A DNA stretch of 64,000 bases from contig CBFFRP010000369.1 of the NCBI GenBank assembly GCA_965644295.1, forward strand, positions 1 to 64,000. Direction: 5' to 3'. The translations under genes and the position numbers were made by a program. Below the pieces are notes generated by a model. That model was given only the letters and a program-made list of their open reading frames with translations, did not search any database and was not told the origin of the DNA. The DNA is from Paraphysomonas bandaiensis (lineage: Eukaryota > Protista > Chrysophyceae). Below are positions 16,092-26,298 of the stretch, piece after piece. Every line of letters starts with the position of its first letter. Position 1 is the stretch's first letter.

Positions 16092-18399
16092 CTACGCATT
16101 ACTTGGCTTCTCCACTACGTTGGGAACAGGAAAACAAGCACTATGCGTTCTATCCAATACTACATAGTACGCCTTATCCACCACGGCATCCATGTTCTCT
16201 GCCTTCTTCTGCTGCAATGTTTGTACTCTGCGCATGCAGCAGATCGACAGCGCTACAGAAGCCTACAAATAAAATGAATGATTAGAGGACGCATGGAGTA
16301 GACATCAGAAATACCTTTAGTAGTGACGATGCAGACTCTATCAGCTGATTGTTCCTCAATATTGTAATAGGGCGCATTGACGGGGAACCAGATATCATCT
16401 CCTGGGCAACGTACTTCACCCTCTCCACCACATCCTTTATATTCTTGAAGTGCAATAGCGCGTTCTGGACGTTCTGTTCAGCCGTCCGTTCAGCCAGCTG
16501 CGATCTTGTCTTCAAGAAATCGGAATGAGGTAACGGGGGTGGGTTATGAATCCATTGAAAAGCCTTATACCGACAAACGAAGCGAAAGCCTGCCGATGCG
16601 AAGGAATTATCCTCTAAAGAATGAACCACTCCGCTGTCGAGGAGCTCTAAATGGACTTGGAACAACCCTTTCACCACCTGGGATCTAGCCGTGATTGCAA
16701 CTTCCTCCACGCTAACGGGCAGAGGAGGTGGGGGTTGTTGCTGCAACACTTTCTTCGCTTCCTTCAAAGCTTTACTACTTTGCTTACTCTTCTTCGAATT
16801 TTTCCCCTTAGAAAGTGTTTTAAGGGTTTCCTCAGCTTCAGCTTTATGTGATTCATACAAAGCTATCCGCATCTGGTGCCGTAGCTCGCGCATCTTTTTC
16901 ACAGCCCACATCTGACTAGATAGAATATAGTCCCAGTACCAATAGAAAGAGCAAATCTCGGAAGGTGCCAAGAGGTCCATTTCCATCTGAACTGATAGAT
17001 AAGTGTCCATTAAACCGGTAACGAGAGCCATTGCCCAATAAGTAAACCATTGCTGTGTAGGCTGTCCCTCTCCAGCTGACAACGCATCTCTGACAGAGGC
17101 ATCTATGGCCGCTGCGTCATTCATTACTCCTCCCCACCTCTCGAATACTGCTTCCAATCTCCCACCCAGCCTCGTGCGGTGAACAGAAAAAGGCCTCATT
17201 GTATCCCACAAATGTCCTCCTAGTATAGCCGCCCACTGGTGACAGAGGTCAGACTGGGTCAAAGAAATTGGAATCCCTCGGTTGACCATAGAGGCGAGAA
17301 CAAGTTCAGGAAGCAAGGGCCGCAAGCCATGCAGTAAAGCCCACACCACTGATCGCGGCAGTACTGTTGCTCCAGAGAGTGAAAGTGTAGACATGTAGCT
17401 GAGCAAGGCATCCGCATCTAATTCCGACGTGCTCACCACATCTCGGAGGGAGGCACATAGTACTTCGATGCGACCACACTCATCGGCCATAAACGAAACA
17501 CTTTCCGCATAGGAACGCATCGAAAAGGTGCGAGCTGGGGCATTCTGTTTTATTTTAAGAATATCAGGCTGAAACGCACTGTCTATGACTCCTTCAGTGC
17601 AGGAACATGACTGGAGAACATTTTTCAGAGCCTCCAGTGAACGTTTCGCCCGCTTGGCCTCCTCACAAACACGAGACACGCGACCGGCCATGCCAGGGAT
17701 ATCACACATTTCCAGACTGGTTTTAGCGCTTTTTACTGACTCCCTGGTCTCGGTGGCAATGACATCCAATAGATTATGGAGACATTCTCTTGTCTTGAGT
17801 ATAGCAGCCACCTCCTCAGACAGGTTTGCACTCTCTCTGGATATGACCTCGCAAAGAGACTCCAATGCAGCTGAGGATTCTATTTCTGACTCGTTAGCAG
17901 AGGGTATGGAGGTGTGATGGAAATCATCATCCTCAAAAATGTCAGCTGTCAAGACGGCATCACGAAGAAGCCTTGCGCTCACCACCAAGTCCTTGCAGTA
18001 AACTGTTAACACATTGGCACATCCTTCACAGCCAGACAACACTTTCCATGCCTGAGGCCATACATACACACATTGATTAATACTCTCCAACAGAGCCGCC
18101 CCATCAAAATAAGCCGCCTCGTAGACAATCATCTGTCTGAGAATAGAGGAGAGAGCGGCTGCATCGATATCAGAGGACACGTGAGAGACTATCAGATCAT
18201 CGAAGTCACTGCACTTCACTCCAAAGCATGGATCCATTTTCGGGTCAAGTATCTCAACAGCAGACATGGAGTCAAACAGAGAGAAGGAGGAGGAGGTCAG
18301 CATAGGGGTGTCATTATCCAGCCCTTCGGCCACTCGCCTGCAAAGCTCTGTGATGTCCTCCAGCTCAACTTTCTGTTGCTGGTGATTATCCGTATCCAT
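16092..18399 (-). CDS. NAA35: NatC auxiliary subunit Mak10/NAA35 (one short intron near the 3' end)
   Basis: FSLFDSMSAVEILDPKMD, DIFEDDDF, EICSFYWYWDYIL and RYKAFQWIHNPPPL are Mak10 signatures. The last exon ends at TAG 16092-16094. Confidence 0.9.
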
Positions 18400-18485
18400 T
18401 GTATGGGGATAGTGGTGGACTCAGAGATATAAAGTTAAATATATAACAATACATTGATGGCATCTCTGTGCTGTACTCGTATGGT

Positions 18486-19139
18486 GTATGTATGTATGTA
18501 TGTATGTATGTATGTATGTATGTATGTATGTATGTATGTATGTATGTATGTATGTATGTATGTATGTATGTATGTATGTATGTATGTATGTATGTATGTA
18601 TGTATGTATGTATGTATGTATGTATGTATGTATGTATGTATGTATGTATGTATGTATGTATGTATGTATGTATGTATGTATGTATGTATGTATGTATGTA
18701 TGTATGTATGTATGTATGTATGTATGTATGTATGTATGTATGTATGTATGTATGTATGTATGTATGTATGTATGTATGTATGTATGTATGTATGTATGTA
18801 TGTATGTATGTATGTATGTATGTATGTATGTATGTATGTATGTATGTATGTATGTATGTATGTATGTATGTATGTATGTATGTATGTATGTAGGTATGTA
18901 TGTAGGTATGTATGTAGGTATGTATGTATGTATGTATGTATGTATGTATGTATGTATGTATGTATGTATGTATGTATGTATGTATGTATGTATGTATGTA
19001 TGTATGTATGTATGTATGTATGTATGTATGTATGTATGTATGTATGTATGTATGTATGTATGTATGTATGTATGTATGTATGTATGTATGTATGTATGTA
19101 TGTATGTATGTATGTATGTATGTATGTATGTATGTATGT
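18486..19139. repeat. (GTAT)n tetranucleotide array, about 650 bp
   Basis: Near-perfect array with three GTAG variant units spaced 12 bp apart near 18890-18920. Confidence 0.98.
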
Positions 19140-19261
19140 TTGTATACGTACAGTATATAGTGTGATATTGTGTAGGTGTTTGTATGTGTTGTATGTATAT
19201 AGAGGAGTGCTCTATCTTGAACTATAACGACAGCTGCATTACCAGGACCACTATTACAGAC

Positions 19262-22200
19262 ATGTCCACGGAACCCTCAGCTACTTCCTCCTCCACTCCT
19301 TTGAGTGAACCTGCCCAGGAGCTTAAAGCTAGGGGTAACTCCGCATACAGTGAGGGTGATCACGAGGAGGCTGTGAGATGCTTCACTGAGGCGTTGTCTC
19401 TCTGTCCCGACCATGAGATCCTCTTATGCAACAGGAGTATGGCGTATGCAGCTATGAGCGAATGGGATAAATCGATTGAAGATGCTAAGCAGGTGATTGG
19501 CTGGATGGATGTGTTGTGTGGTCTGATAGATGTGTCTGGCTGTGCTCACAGGCTGTGAAGTTAGCCCCAAAGTATGAGAAGGCTTATTTCCGTCTCGTGA
19601 AAGCTCTGGTAACATCTGTATTGTATTTTGATTGTGAATATAATGTGTAGTGTTGAAAATATATACTTCTTAGATTCAAAAGGAGAGATTCAAAGATGCG
19701 AGACTCTATCTGACTATTGGATTCAACGAATGCGGGAATTCAAAACACCTTCGCGTCCTGGAACAGGATATACTGGATGCTACTGGAATTCCAGTGCGCC
19801 CTAAACCACACGATTTTGATACTATTGAGGAGCTCGGAGACGGTAATTTCTCGAAAATATATAAAGCTGAACACAAGCCTACTGGAAAGGTGTACGCTGT
19901 TAAGGTCAGCGAATTAAGCTCCCGTATATTAGGAGTGTCTTATATCTAACTATATAGACAATTGAAAAAATGACTGTGGACCGAATGAAAAGACGCCATA
20001 CAAATATTCATAATGAAATTCTGATAGAGAAAAGGGTACGTCTGGAGTGAGAATGATTCCATAAACTCACTTTTTTTCAGACACTCAACAAACTTGATCA
20101 TCCCAATATAGTAACATTGTACTCTACTTTTCAAGACTATGGTACTTTGTACTATCAGATGGAGTTCTTGAGCGGTGGTGAGGTCTGGAGTCATCTTCAA
20201 GATAGCTACAGTGGATCATCTGTTGGGTGCCCTCTCTCCCTCGCCCGATTTTTCATTGCGGAGGCGATCAACGCACTGGAGTACATGCACAGGTGAGTGC
20301 AAATTTTACCATGGCTCTTTCGTTTAACACTGGCCTCTTATATTTATATAGGCGGGGAATTGTGCATAGAGGTGAACTTTTCCGCCTGGTTACACGTTTT
20401 ATTTTGACGTCATAATTTCTGTTATCGCAGATGTGAAACCCGAGAATATGTTACTCACAGCGGATGGTAAGTTTACTATCCATTATACTTCTTTCTAGTG
20501 CTTCTGATGCTAATATTAGGACATCTGAAGTTTGTAGACTTCGGCACATGCAAAGACCTTTTGCAACCTGATTTAAACGGCCAGGAATTCGTCGGGACGG
20601 CGGAATACATGAGTCCAGAGGTAGTTGAAAGCAAGGATAGCGGACCGGAAACTGACCTGTGGGCCCTAGGCGTGGTACTGTATCAGATGATGACGGGATA
20701 CACCACTTTTTTAGCAGCCAGTCCTTATTTGTCCTTTCTGCGCATCAAGCGTACGTTTATCCGACAGCCGTGTTTTGCGTCTCAGTCTACACAGAGCTTG
20801 ATATCTACTCTAATCCAACGGAACAAGAAAAAGCGACTGCAGAGTGCAGCCGCTCTCACCCAATCTTCGGATGAAAAAGTAATTCTATCATATGACAAGC
20901 TTCGCCAGCACCCCTTTTTTACAGATGCCAAAGACTTTGTGTTTCCTAATCCCTATAAGCCTGCCCCGGCTGTCAGGGTCCCTCGGCTAGGGGAGTTAGC
21001 TCTCAGGGCGGTAGGAATGGCAGCCAAAGTGGCGGCCGAAAAGATATCAGTAAACGGTGGGTCCAGGGTGGGTCTGGATAAGTGGGTACAAGAGTTTTCT
21101 CTCACACGACTACCTGAGCACTCACGGAAAGGAGTTCTGCACTATCTTAATCGCCGTGGGGAAGCCCATGCTCCCGCAGTGTACCGTCTATTCTGGTCTT
21201 CTGTAGTGGATGCGAGGTGCATACGGCCAGACTGGACAGAGAAAGAGATCCTTGGCTTCAATAGACACACTCAGGGCCACTGGGAGAAGGGATTTACGTT
21301 TGCATACGTCACCGATCCCCTCTTTGGTCGAACAGACCCTGTAAAGTGTGAGGCAGAACAGCATAACCTCCGCACCGCCATTTCTGCCATAAACAAATGC
21401 CGACCCAGATTTGTTGTGATAGGTGGAAATTTTACAAGTGCTTCGCCTGATATCGCTGCTGTGGCGTCTGGAAGTGTAGACGCTCACCTTACACAAACAG
21501 AACTGTTTCGTCGGTATATATCTGCTATGCCTTGTATTATCACATCATGCGTATTGTGATGTAGATGTGCCGCGCGTGTATCAGAAACTATTCCAGTCCT
21601 TTTTGTTCCAGGTGACCACGATTGTGCTGAGAATGGTATACCGACCCCAGAGTCTTTGGGTGAGTGTATTTTGTACCGTTGTGTAGTTGTCTCAGTTTCC
21701 TGTATTGGGCAGAACGCTACCGCAGTCGTTATGGCTGCGACCACTTTGGCTTTTGGTATGGCGGTGTCAGGCTACTAGTGATCAACTCAACTTTGATGAT
21801 TCACCCCGAGGTAAGATAGTATAATCATGACTTTGTTTTGCCTGCCTCAACCACTCGCCCTCCTGCGTTATCAGAGGGCTCCGGTACAGGCTGCCTACCA
21901 AGATACTTGGTTGGAGGAAGAATTGGAGCAGTGTAGGATGTGTGCAATGCACGTAGTTGTTTTTTCCCATCATCGGTGGTTTATTGATCATGCTGATGAA
22001 GACAACTGCCAAGACGTTGCTGTAAAGTATGCCTTATTCTTTTGAGTTCTCCCTCTGAGCTTACATTCACTGCAGGGTGATGCCGAAGACACTTCGCGAC
22101 AAGTGGCTTCCAAAGATGCGCCATGTTAAATTGAAGTATGTGTTTGCGGGAGGATGCGTATGTGACCAGAGTGCTGTAATTGCACCCTACCCTAAGAAGA

Positions 22201-22808
22201 TCGCACGGATTCGTGGTGAGACACGATCGGCATCACTTTATTTTATTTCATTCTGCATTACGAATAGATGGCAGTGGGGCGAATCGGGATGAGGACCAAG
22301 TACAGATGACGACTGAAGCACTGTGTGTGAGCGATGTATCTGTCACAGAGGCGAGCCAGGAGTGCGGGTATATGACACCTGGAAAATCTGTATGTGCTTT
22401 TAGTGTTTTGTGTAGTTCTGCGATCTCTGAAGGCGTTGAAAGCCAAGATGATACCGTGGAGCGGGATTGGAAAGAGTTACCGCCGGACATGCCGGAGTAC
22501 AGCGACACTGATTCCGAGAAGGATGGAGATGAAGAGAATAAAGATAAAGACGAGACTGAAGAGGATGACAATGTATGTGTATGATTGTGTGCTATTCCGG
22601 ACTCAATTAATGTCTACTGCTACAGGGTCTCTTCAGCCCCGACACCACTTACAACGGTCCAGAATTAGTGATAACGGCCCCCATTGGAACAGCGTCGACC
22701 GACTCTGGAGTTCAAGTGTTTCGTCTGATAGATGTGGTAAATGAGGAGTGTATGCAGCAACGTGCATTCTCGATTGATTCAATTCCAACTAAATTGGATA
22801 GAACGTAG
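19262..22808 (+). CDS. TPR + PDK1-like AGC kinase + CPPED1-like calcineurin-type metallophosphoesterase fusion (multi-exon)
   Basis: Spliced translation gives TPR (ELKARGNSAY...NRSMAY...KYEKAYFR), kinase (LGDGNFSKIY, YAVK, HRDVKPEN, DFGTCK, FVGTAEYMSPE, DLWALG) and CPPED1-like blocks (FAYVTDPLFG, PRFVVIGGN, LFVPGDHD, FGFWYGGVRLLVINS, QDTWLEEEL, VVFSHH). Kinase and phosphoesterase are joined inside the single ORF 20498-21559. Confidence 0.88.
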
Positions 22809-24210: not shown

Positions 24211-26298
24211 GAATTGGGCCTTACCCTTCAGGAACCTGAGCCTCCCGAACCACAGGATGAACACATGCTGACCAACCTAAAACAAGAACTCGGCCTTAAT
24301 AGCGTCCAACCAGATACTTTCAAGGCTATCTTCACAGATGGATCATACACAGCCAGTGCGCTCTCCACGCGTCGCCTCACTCATGTCAATCCGCGAACAC
24401 GATGGACACACCGAGGAGGTGCAGCGGTCGTCTACTTACCCCCAGAAAATGCCTGGGAAGATGGTACAACCATAATACTACGACTAGATACACCCTTTCG
24501 TGATGTGCCCGGTTTGGACTCATACGCATATGAACTCATAGGCACAGCCATGGGGCTTATACTCTCAACACGCATTCCCGAACACATAAGAAGCCACACA
24601 GACTATCAGGCAGTGTGCACCCGCACTGAGGAAGCACTCTCCACAAGACGCAGAGCTCTCGGTCACCGTGCAAAAGGGGTACTACTCGAAAGCATCGCGG
24701 CCAGTAGAGATTGCAAACGACAGGTGACCTGGGTGAGGTCTCATCCCGAACGACGTACCACAGATGAAACGGAGTGGACGTTTGAGGACAAGGGCATCTA
24801 TATTGCGGACGCAGTTGCGGGTGAAGACTGGCATGAAGTCGATCGCATCCTTGGAAAAAATAACTACACTGTCTGTACAATTGCGATTGACAGTGCCATC
24901 GAACGCTTACTAACTGCTGGATTATGGCACTGGCGTATGCACAGTACAAGACGGCCATACTACTCTAGCCCACTCCTTACTAATTTCCAAGATCTCTGCG
25001 ACCTAAGGACACTTGAGAACTACACTTCAACCAGAGATCAACGCTACGGACACAATCCTGATCGAGCGCCTGGCTACTGGACCAATAGCGGAGTACACCT
25101 CCCGCGCAAACTAGCTCAAGCGGATGGCAGTGCATCCAAAGACAAACTCAGCTCAAATCTACGCCAAAGAATACTCAACACGGCACTGACATGGGACAAA
25201 TCTTTCTGCATAGGGAGGAACCGGGCCAAAACCAAACAGGGGCTTGACCTGACCAAAGTCGCATGCTCTGACTGCGGGTTTCGACTAGATTCCCTAAAAC
25301 ATATGTGCCTCGACTGCACACATGAATCCATCACCCAAATAAGGGAAACTGCATTTCAATCGCATAAAAATGTGCTCCACGAAATACAGAGAACTCAGAC
25401 CTTACCCAACTGGATCACATCTGCACTACGGAGACTCTCCAGCAGAGCCTGGAATCCCTCCATCCCACAGGTCGAGAGATACTGGACTGGAACCATCACA
25501 GCAGCCCAACTGGAAACGGTCTTCGGAGATGCCATACACAACCACCTGACGGCACACAGTCTACGGAACCTAGAAACAGCGGTTATTAATCTCCTGCAAC
25601 CGCTTTACACTGCAGCGAAGCTTATGTTACAGGATCGCGGTTGTCGCTATATCACCATGTCCAAAAGGCCGCCCAGGCTACTCCCGAGACCCCGTCCGAA
25701 ACGCAGTCAGTCAAGACAACGTCCGAGAGTCCTTCGATTACTAGGGGTCCAACGAAGACCCCCCACAGCGTATCCGACTCCAGACACACGTGCACACCTC
25801 ACAGGTCCTACCCGACAGAGCACTGGACTGCCCAGACCTCCACAACGCCGACGGCTTCGACAACTCTATCTACACCCGCGGCCCCACAGGAGCACAGTAA
25901 CACAGACTACAAACCCAACTCCTCCTCCCAACAATCCCCACCACTCTCAACCCACACATCTGGAACTAGGTGCACTCAGGACCCTAATTCAGAACGCTGA
26001 GCCCCCTCCAAAACCAATGGAGACCCATCCCAAAGGGAGACCCCCAGATCAAATACGCCGGTGAGTCCACGGACACACAATAAAGGCGAATTTCATATCA
26101 CACAAAAAGAACGGAAGTGGTTGCACCTTGGTGCTTGCGGCGACGCACAAGCAGCTTTCGTAGCGTTAAATAGTAGGATAAAAGAGTTTGTATTGATTAG
26201 TTACGGGTAGTGGTCTAACTAGTATGACTAGCATTCTTCTAGCCACTAATTGATGCAAGGTCTCAACGCCTATTGCTAAATAATCAGACATTCACTAC
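24211..26298 (+). mobile_element. 5'-truncated non-LTR retrotransposon (LINE) encoding RNase H and a CCHC knuckle
   Basis: 13-bp TSD TTGTAATTAATGG at 24198-24210 and 26299-26311. ORF 24214-26064 has RNase H motifs (FTDGS, YAYE, HTDY, WVRSH, IADAVA) and CSDC-x8-H-x4-C. The ORF is open from the element's 5' junction; no RT domain remains. Confidence 0.92.

Follow-up and report, generated by a model that had tools for sequence, protein, structure and literature searches.

A 64,000-nucleotide stretch of the Paraphysomonas bandaiensis genome (assembly GCA_965644295.1, contig CBFFRP010000369.1, positions 1 to 64,000; the window) carries, at 19262..22808 on the forward strand, a gene whose product joins a kinase of the PDK1 type to a phosphoesterase of the CPPED1 family. 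The locus is one expressed gene encoding a 927-residue protein of four modules: a tetratricopeptide repeat (TPR) domain, the kinase, a helical linker and the phosphoesterase. The kinase has kept its catalytic residues and has no pleckstrin homology (PH) domain; the phosphoesterase has lost most of the invariant residues of its metal site and is probably a pseudoenzyme, judging by alignment with its relatives. PDK1 is the master activator of AGC kinases and, in animals and plants, bears a C-terminal PH domain that binds phosphoinositides. To our knowledge, little has been learnt about the steering of PDK1 where the organism has no form with a PH domain.

The evidence for a single gene comes from P0032, a 927-residue open reading frame (ORF) that is flagged 'complete' in an MMETSP transcriptome assembly and was retrieved by word search and alignment of the first matches. 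Compared exon by exon, the translations of 13 of the 15 exons are consecutive stretches of P0032 at 100% identity; for exons 13 and 14 (22268-22572), the splice junctions and the intron of 48 nt between them were placed by visual comparison with P0032 775-870. All introns of the gene are GT-AG and 45-65 nt long. The original prediction, made from the DNA letters alone, had left it to expression data whether the locus yields one transcript or two, and the complete transcript, a single ORF, matches the exons of 19262-22808. P0032 served as the sequence for all whole-protein analyses of the fusion protein. The gene is laid out as follows:

19262..22808 (+): whole gene; 15 exons, 927 codons plus a TAG stop; ATG at 19262, TAG at 22806-22808
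19262-19492, 19552-19608, 19674-19904, 19958-20035 and 20081-20292 (+): exons 1-5, from three-frame translation and splice sites
20352-20371, 20431-20466, 20520-21513, 21565-21659 and 21713-21810 (+): exons 6-10, from the same evidence
21875-22026, 22076-22215, 22268-22367, 22416-22572 and 22626-22808 (+): exons 11-15, likewise
20520-21513 (+): exon 8; 330 codons without a stop, 100% identical to P0032 290-619, running from the kinase DFG motif and C-lobe through the linker (110 residues) to past phosphoesterase motif II

The claim that kinase and phosphoesterase share one exon holds for their junction, which lies within exon 8; the phosphoesterase in its entirety extends over exons 8-15. The alternative that the fusion is an artefact, two neighbouring genes merged by read-through or mis-assembly, has a negligible probability, and nothing was found in its favour: the reading frame of exon 8 stays open through the junction, the exons agree with the ORF of a complete transcript, and the same domain order recurs in dozens of orthologues from other taxa, with intron-free ORF fragments on contigs of other organisms crossing the kinase-phosphoesterase junction too.

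The modules follow one another along the protein in this order:

19262..19784 (+): TPR domain; residues ~16-133, exons 1, 2 and the start of 3; Pfam TPR_1/TPR_2 (19-108), three TPR motifs and a capping helix
19818..20920 (+): AGC/PDK1-like kinase domain; residues 145-422, exons 3-8; Pfam Pkinase, PDB and Foldseek
19902-19904, 20365-20371/20431-20432, from 20537, and 20585-20587 (+): kinase landmarks K173, HRD, DFG and Glu311, the last at the position of PDK1 Ser241
20963..21289 (+): helical linker; residues ~437-545; motifs RVPxLxELCxRAVG ... HYLxR ... YRLF, conserved in the fusion family
21290..22805 (+): CPPED1-like calcineurin-type phosphoesterase; residues 546-927, exons 8-15; profile, BLASTP and ESM Atlas

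The kinase is intact, as had been read from its motifs. It contains the GDGNF loop, the AVK lysine (Lys173), HRD (275-277), DFG (295-297) and the segment FVGTAEYMSPE, and Pfam Pkinase matches residues 145-402 of P0032 at 198 bits. In a 44-member alignment of the fusion family, K173, E197, HRD, N282 of the KPEN motif and DFG are invariant. Its nearest relative in the PDB by sequence is human PDK1 (165 bits), followed by Akt2 (160 bits). A structure prediction, proposed with the original claims, gave a full-length AlphaFold2 (AF2) model with a predicted local distance difference test (pLDDT) score of 86.7 and a predicted template modelling (pTM) score of 0.85; Foldseek matched this model to the human PDK1 kinase domain at all of ranks 1-45, with template modelling (TM) scores of 0.85-0.92. 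NCBI and JGI label orthologues of the fusion as AGC/PDK1 or as 3-phosphoinositide-dependent kinase. The PDK1-like character of the kinase, claimed from the activation segment, is thus borne out by both sequence and fold searches.

The predicted absence of a PH domain also stood up: Pfam finds none in P0032, nor in six orthologues. The column equivalent to PDK1 Ser241 holds Glu in 31 of 42 family rows and Asn in the remaining 11 (Glu311 in P. bandaiensis), and the fusion family is accordingly predicted not to use a Ser241-type autophosphorylation site. Residues at the equivalents of the PDK1-interacting fragment (PIF) pocket and phosphate site are conserved in the family at K177, V180, I194, K198, T215, Q217 and L222, which we take to correspond to human PDK1 K115, I118, V127, R131 (Lys here), T148, Q150 and L155. 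The fusion kinase has in common with PDK1 the FVGTA-Y-SPE activation segment, the TFQD strand and most PIF-pocket and phosphate-site residues, but differs from it in the missing PH domain, in Glu or Asn at the Ser241 position, in a five-residue insert before helix C, and in the addition of an N-terminal TPR and of a C-terminal linker and phosphoesterase fold. Reading through the segment after the P0032 kinase, which was not submitted to a pattern scan, revealed no FxxF[ST][YF] hydrophobic motif. The sequence DFVFPNPY was considered as a mimic of that motif and rejected, as it lies only 6-12 residues past the kinase core, too near to reach the N-lobe.

The N-terminal TPR, likewise anticipated, is found by Pfam (TPR_1/TPR_2) and modelled by AF2 as seven helices at residues 16-133 with pLDDT above 90. 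Its nearest natural matches in the PDB are Hop TPR1, RPAP3, SGT, Tom70 and PP5. An ungapped HMMER match of residues 16-75 to residues 2-61 of 1ELW places K22, N26 and N57 on the two-carboxylate clamp, and extension of the Hop TPR1 register places K87 and R91 on it as well; the clamp residues of Hop TPR1 are taken here to be K8, N12, N43, K73 and R77. These columns are conserved in all members of the fusion family that have a TPR, and the domain is, judged from these residues, of the Hsp70/Hsp90 co-chaperone type. It shares with PP5, Hop, SGT, RPAP3 and Tom70 the three-repeat TPR and the K-N-N-K-R clamp and, as in PP5, lies N-terminal to a catalytic domain; in PP5 the TPR autoinhibits the enzyme until Hsp90 binds. 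The fusion differs from these proteins in that the TPR is joined to a kinase and that binding of EEVD tails is putative. A Pfam match to TPR_BSK1_C is weak (27.6 bits) and under the cut-off. Plant BSK kinases also carry a kinase and a TPR on one chain, but in a different order and from different families.

The linker separates kinase and phosphoesterase and is found only in the fusion family. Modelled alone by AF2 it is confidently helical (pLDDT 88.8); it matches nothing in Pfam, and fold searches gave nothing significant (Foldseek E > 3; best VIA Z 4.5). Its identity is 42-50% among most ochrophyte orthologues and 22-33% to Ectocarpus, Achlya and a diatom. The VPxLxELCxRAV motif had raised the suspicion of an F-box or an Elongin-BC-box-like module, which was dropped when the N-termini of ZYG11B and APPBP2 scored VIA Z 3.6-3.9, not significant. 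AceK, the top VIA match, was also dismissed, since its Z of 4.5 is not significant either. AceK, HprK/P and PFK-2/FBPase-2 resemble the fusion in combining a kinase and a phosphatase on one chain, although the families and the domain order are different.

The C-terminal domain is related to CPPED1, as had been claimed. A profile of 61 standalone CPPED1-like proteins matches P0032 at 537-735 (E 5.5e-31), BLASTP aligns the standalone P. bandaiensis paralogue with P0032 547-754 (E 4e-21), and the nearest ESM Atlas clusters of the C-terminal part are CPPED1, with a TM score of 0.87 over 291 residues (CPPED1-side normalisation). Pfam is a poor detector of this domain: Metallophos scores 17.4 bits on P0032, under the cut-off of 21.5, and a Pfam search of single exons detects the TPR and the kinase and misses the phosphoesterase except for a weak DNA_pol_E_B match, so that a family-specific profile is needed. 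A search of the PDB with the standalone paralogue returned only insignificant purple acid phosphatases (E ~0.09), and no close relative has been solved. Human CPPED1 has the signature D-[x]n-GD-[x]n-GNH[D/E]-[x]n-H-[x]n-GHxH (PMC8366450). The residues invariant in every standalone CPPED1-like protein that aligns at the position (108-121 of 121) were taken as the reference for the metal ligands, and the fused domain compares with them as follows:

21314-21322 (+): motif I, D554/L556; standalone relatives have Asp and Gln; Asp554 kept, Gln replaced by Leu556
21425-21430 (+): motif II, G591-N592; standalone relatives have Gly-Asp; Asp replaced by Asn592
21611-21622 (+): motif III, G636-D637-H638-D639; standalone relatives have Gly-Asn-His; Asn replaced by Asp637, His638 kept
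21968-21973 (+): motif IV, H716-H717; standalone relatives have His; His716 kept
22149-22160 (+): motif V, G760-G761-C762-V763; standalone relatives have Gly-His-x-His; both His lost
22270..22572 (+): acidic Ser/Asp/Glu-rich insert; residues ~783-868, between motif V and the last strands; pLDDT below 50 at 783-855 and 857-868

Five of the eight invariant metal-site residues are replaced and three (Asp554, His638 and His716) are kept. The alignment with standalone relatives recovers every ligand change that had been read from the sequence, namely GD to GN (N592), GNHD to GDHD (D637) and loss of GHxH (GGCV, 760-763), and adds one, the motif I Gln that is Leu556 here. Motif V is placed directly after the strand at 754-759 of the AF2 model, as the fold expects. 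From the roles that these residues have in calcineurin-like folds, the replaced set includes the bridging Asp and, from motif V, one ligand of each metal. P0048, the closest relative, has N, GN, EN and YH at the ligand sites, and even the ligands that P. bandaiensis retains are thus not under selection.

The fold itself has not decayed in the same way. Identity over the phosphoesterase core is 43-49% to most ochrophyte orthologues, one with canonical ligands included, and 24-34% to Ectocarpus, Achlya and a diatom; across orthologues the linker ranges over 22-50% and the kinase over 44-65%, so that the phosphoesterase tracks the linker and lies moderately below the kinase. This pattern is that expected of a pseudoenzyme under constraint, not of a decaying remnant, and we consider it probable, on the alignment, that the fused phosphoesterase of P. 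bandaiensis is a pseudoenzyme. It shares with CPPED1 a homologous fold and family, and the canonical members of the fusion family have the full D-GD-GNHD-H-GHxH signature; it differs from CPPED1 in the five replaced invariants out of eight, the attached kinase, the 85-residue acidic insert and its placement in a separate clade. The acidic insert before the last strands, also noticed at the outset, is confirmed and is predicted to be disordered (the low pLDDT given above); it is present in the canonical-site orthologue P0033 as well. Within it lies the 48-nt intron 22368-22415, which is in frame and stop-free. Its retention would add 16 residues and leave the ORF intact, and an alternative isoform of this kind is possible.

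A decayed site in a constrained phosphatase fold likewise characterizes other pseudophosphatases of signalling pathways, among them STYX, MTMR and the RPTP D2 domains. PHLPP2 has also been reported as a pseudophosphatase (PMC12002173). These proteins have PP2C or PTP folds, whereas the fused domain is calcineurin-like, of the CPPED1 type, and covalently joined to a kinase. No description of a CPPED1-type pseudophosphatase was found in the literature searched.

The original prediction could not tell whether the architecture was already catalogued in other stramenopiles. It is widespread among them and is filed in databases as 'PDK1' or 'protein kinase'. The order kinase-linker-phosphoesterase occurs in the oomycetes Saprolegnia, Aphanomyces, Achlya, Thraustotheca and Lagenidium; in Ectocarpus, Tribonema, the chrysophyte Epipyxis (38-59% identity by domain), Nannochloropsis, Tetraparma and Chrysophaeum; in the diatoms Conticribra (Thalassiosira) weissflogii, Ditylum and Pseudo-nitzschia; and on many environmental contigs. 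One fusion is held by the transcriptome of the foraminifer Bolivina, where its origin is uncertain. The oomycete proteins begin at the kinase and the ochrophyte ones carry the TPR. A tree of the phosphoesterase domain, built from 36 fused and 41 standalone proteins, sets the two kinds apart across a branch supported at 99%, as expected if kinase, linker and phosphoesterase were joined once and both oomycetes and ochrophytes inherited the fusion. Fused and standalone copies co-occur in Ectocarpus, Pseudo-nitzschia and P. bandaiensis. The sequences are already public; in the literature searched, which lacks most subscription journals, no paper on the fusion architecture, its spread or its ligand decay was found, and the architecture is without a description or characterization there.

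Alignment of the metal ligands across orthologues, suggested as a check of the original reading, shows a canonical site in few members and a degenerate one in most. Ligands are fully canonical in Ectocarpus, Tribonema, P0033-35, P0052 and P0065, and canonical as far as the ORF extends in P0044 and P0049; every other member is partly or wholly degenerate. In Pfam, the canonical-site members score Pkinase plus Metallophos, with or without TPR. The CPPED1 profile barely detects the phosphoesterase in diatoms and Nannochloropsis. On the tree, the ligand state changes at least three times, with basal forks unresolved and the ligand columns included in the alignment. The ancestral fusion probably had a phosphoesterase of the active type, whose ligands then decayed in several lineages.

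Candidate substrates are encoded in the same genome, 62.6 Mb in size. At least two genes encode Akt/SGK/S6K-like kinases (L005:1474-2901, minus strand, contig C297, and L008:1856-3040, minus strand, contig C150, both G000). Their T-loop segments, with a canonical S-F-C-G-T, are identical, a downstream exon of each encodes an FEGFTF hydrophobic motif, and they look like a recent duplicate pair; the L005 copy carries an N-terminal PX domain. A T-loop Ser together with a hydrophobic motif is the classical feature of a PDK1 substrate, and on these features the two are candidate PDK1 substrates. No second PDK1-like gene is among the genome's best kinase matches to the fusion kinase, L010 having been assessed without a PDB comparison. 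A second PDK1 with a PH domain was considered and set aside: the next-best matches are a PX plus Akt/SGK-like kinase, an Akt/SGK-like kinase and a PKG-like kinase that binds cyclic nucleotides. The fourth top kinase paralogue, L010, scores only Pkinase in Pfam and is unclassified. The PKG-like gene (L009:1150-2913, plus strand, contig C297, G000) encodes two cyclic-nucleotide-binding domains ahead of its catalytic domain.

The genome also contains a standalone CPPED1-like gene, intron-free and 334 residues long (L007:1387-2391, minus strand; G000 contig C72, ~67886-68890), which keeps the full D / GD / GNHD / H / GHxH signature. Its relatives, one of them from Ochromonas, are named 'serine/threonine-protein phosphatase CPPED1' by JGI, and some CpdA.

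The explanation that we lean towards, as a whole and with some reserve, is that of a PDK1 controlled through its appended modules. The chances seem about even that the kinase is the cell's PDK1, docking on AGC substrates, needing no Ser241 phosphorylation and coupled by its TPR to Hsp70/90. In this capacity it would phosphorylate the T-loop Ser of the Akt/SGK/S6K-like kinases of the genome and dock on their FEGF-T-F hydrophobic motif through its largely conserved PIF pocket. Glu or Asn at the Ser241 position would make phosphorylation of its own T-loop unnecessary and the kinase constitutively competent, with control exerted instead through the appended modules. The TPR may couple the kinase to the C-termini of Hsp70/90, or gate the kinase through them, in analogy to PP5. 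The dead phosphoesterase would bind a phosphorylated segment of an AGC kinase and thereby take over the recruiting and regulatory job of the PH domain in animal and plant PDK1, while in lineages with canonical ligands (Ectocarpus, Tribonema) it would still erase the phosphate, and only the degenerate forms would be restricted to binding.

The role of the phosphoesterase is the more tentative part. It may serve for docking or regulation without catalysis, the simplest hypothesis being that it binds a phosphorylated segment of an AGC kinase; this is suggested by analogy, because human CPPED1 is reported to remove the phosphate of the Akt hydrophobic motif (pSer473), which is also the motif read by PDK1. 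Carried further, and with correspondingly little confidence, the fusion could be a single-chain 'writer plus eraser/reader' for AGC kinases. The PDK1 part would write the T-loop phosphate and the CPPED1-type domain would recognize the phosphorylated hydrophobic motif of the same substrates, erasing its phosphate where the site is canonical, in brown and yellow-green algae, and only holding or shielding that phosphate where the site is dead, in P. bandaiensis, chrysophytes, diatoms and oomycetes.

Several points weigh against this explanation. The sequence margin of PDK1 over Akt2 (165 versus 160 bits) is small, making the assignment by sequence marginal. The equivalents of I119 and V124 of the PIF pocket are not hydrophobic, in a region where the five-residue insert before helix C makes the alignment uncertain. 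The link between CPPED1 and Akt rests on few papers. Finally, Asp554, His638, Asp637 and His716 could still hold one metal and confer a residual or altered activity.

The main rival gives the phosphoesterase a purely intramolecular role, structural or regulatory, towards the kinase (through autoinhibition, stabilization or dimerization); it would bind no phospho-ligand, and the decay of its site would reflect a lost pocket function. This is a possibility to which we give limited credence, comparable to that given to a phospho-segment binder. The AF2 model is consistent with a compact, packed multi-domain unit, and a pTM of 0.85 over 927 residues fits rigid packing between domains; motif III varies freely in degenerate orthologues (GSSD, GGND, GERD, GPAD), the CPPED1 profile scarcely recognizes the domain in diatoms and Nannochloropsis, and the linker co-evolves with both of its neighbours. 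However, the fully canonical site kept in Ectocarpus, Tribonema, P0033-35 and P0052 indicates that the pocket was long functional in the fusion, and GN[FM]T, which many of the degenerate members conserve at motif II, is a hint that the pocket persists in altered form.

Residual catalysis and small-molecule sensing are less likely. A non-canonical enzyme with a mononuclear or swapped Asn592/Asp637 site would make the protein a bifunctional kinase/phosphatase. Asp554, His638, Asp639 and His716 are retained, and the D to N and N to D replacements resemble a swap that could preserve one metal site; yet the two His of GHxH are gone, as is the Gln of motif I, although no aligned standalone protein varies at these positions; P0048, the closest relative, does not conserve the ligands that are retained here; and Metallophos stays under its Pfam cut-off, all of which leaves this reading improbable. 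Less probable again is a small-molecule sensor, a pseudo-phosphodiesterase that would gate the kinase on binding a cyclic nucleotide or some other phosphoester. CPPED1 does have a class III cAMP-phosphodiesterase signature, its closest non-eukaryotic homologues are CpdA enzymes (PMC8366450), and the CpdA name given by JGI to some standalone relatives points the same way, but nucleotide binding in the calcineurin-like fold relies on the metal centre, which is lost in the P. bandaiensis fusion.

Irrespective of the role of the phosphoesterase, the PDK1 of a whole branch of a eukaryotic supergroup, including diatoms, brown algae and oomycete pathogens of plants and fish, appears to be joined to a member of the CPPED1 family, and the conservation of such a fused gene argues strongly, on genomic grounds, for a common pathway of PDK1 and CPPED1. 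Within this single architecture the sites grade from canonical to dead, a natural experiment on the passage from phosphatase to pseudophosphatase. If the 'writer plus eraser/reader' idea were true, the fusion would argue, as a Rosetta stone and on independent evolutionary grounds, that the ancestral function of CPPED1 proteins in eukaryotes is that of hydrophobic-motif phosphatases in the PDK1/AGC pathway, and it would provide the first CPPED1-type pseudophosphatase and a PH-independent steering of PDK1. Nannochloropsis, Phaeodactylum, Phytophthora and Ectocarpus are tractable stramenopiles with which the idea can be tested.

The surroundings of the gene in the window are unrelated to the fusion on the upstream side, where a divergent single-exon ORF of 705 residues (16282-18399, minus strand) carries Mak10 and NAA35-like TPR domains. 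Mak10/NAA35 is the auxiliary subunit of the NatC N-acetyltransferase. A (TGTA)n microsatellite at 18485-19145, with ~165 copies and a 98% match, fills most of the 860-bp divergent intergenic region upstream of the start codon of the fusion gene and gives rise to spurious 'MYVC' ORFs. Downstream of the fusion gene lies an ORF of 616 residues (24214-26064, plus strand).

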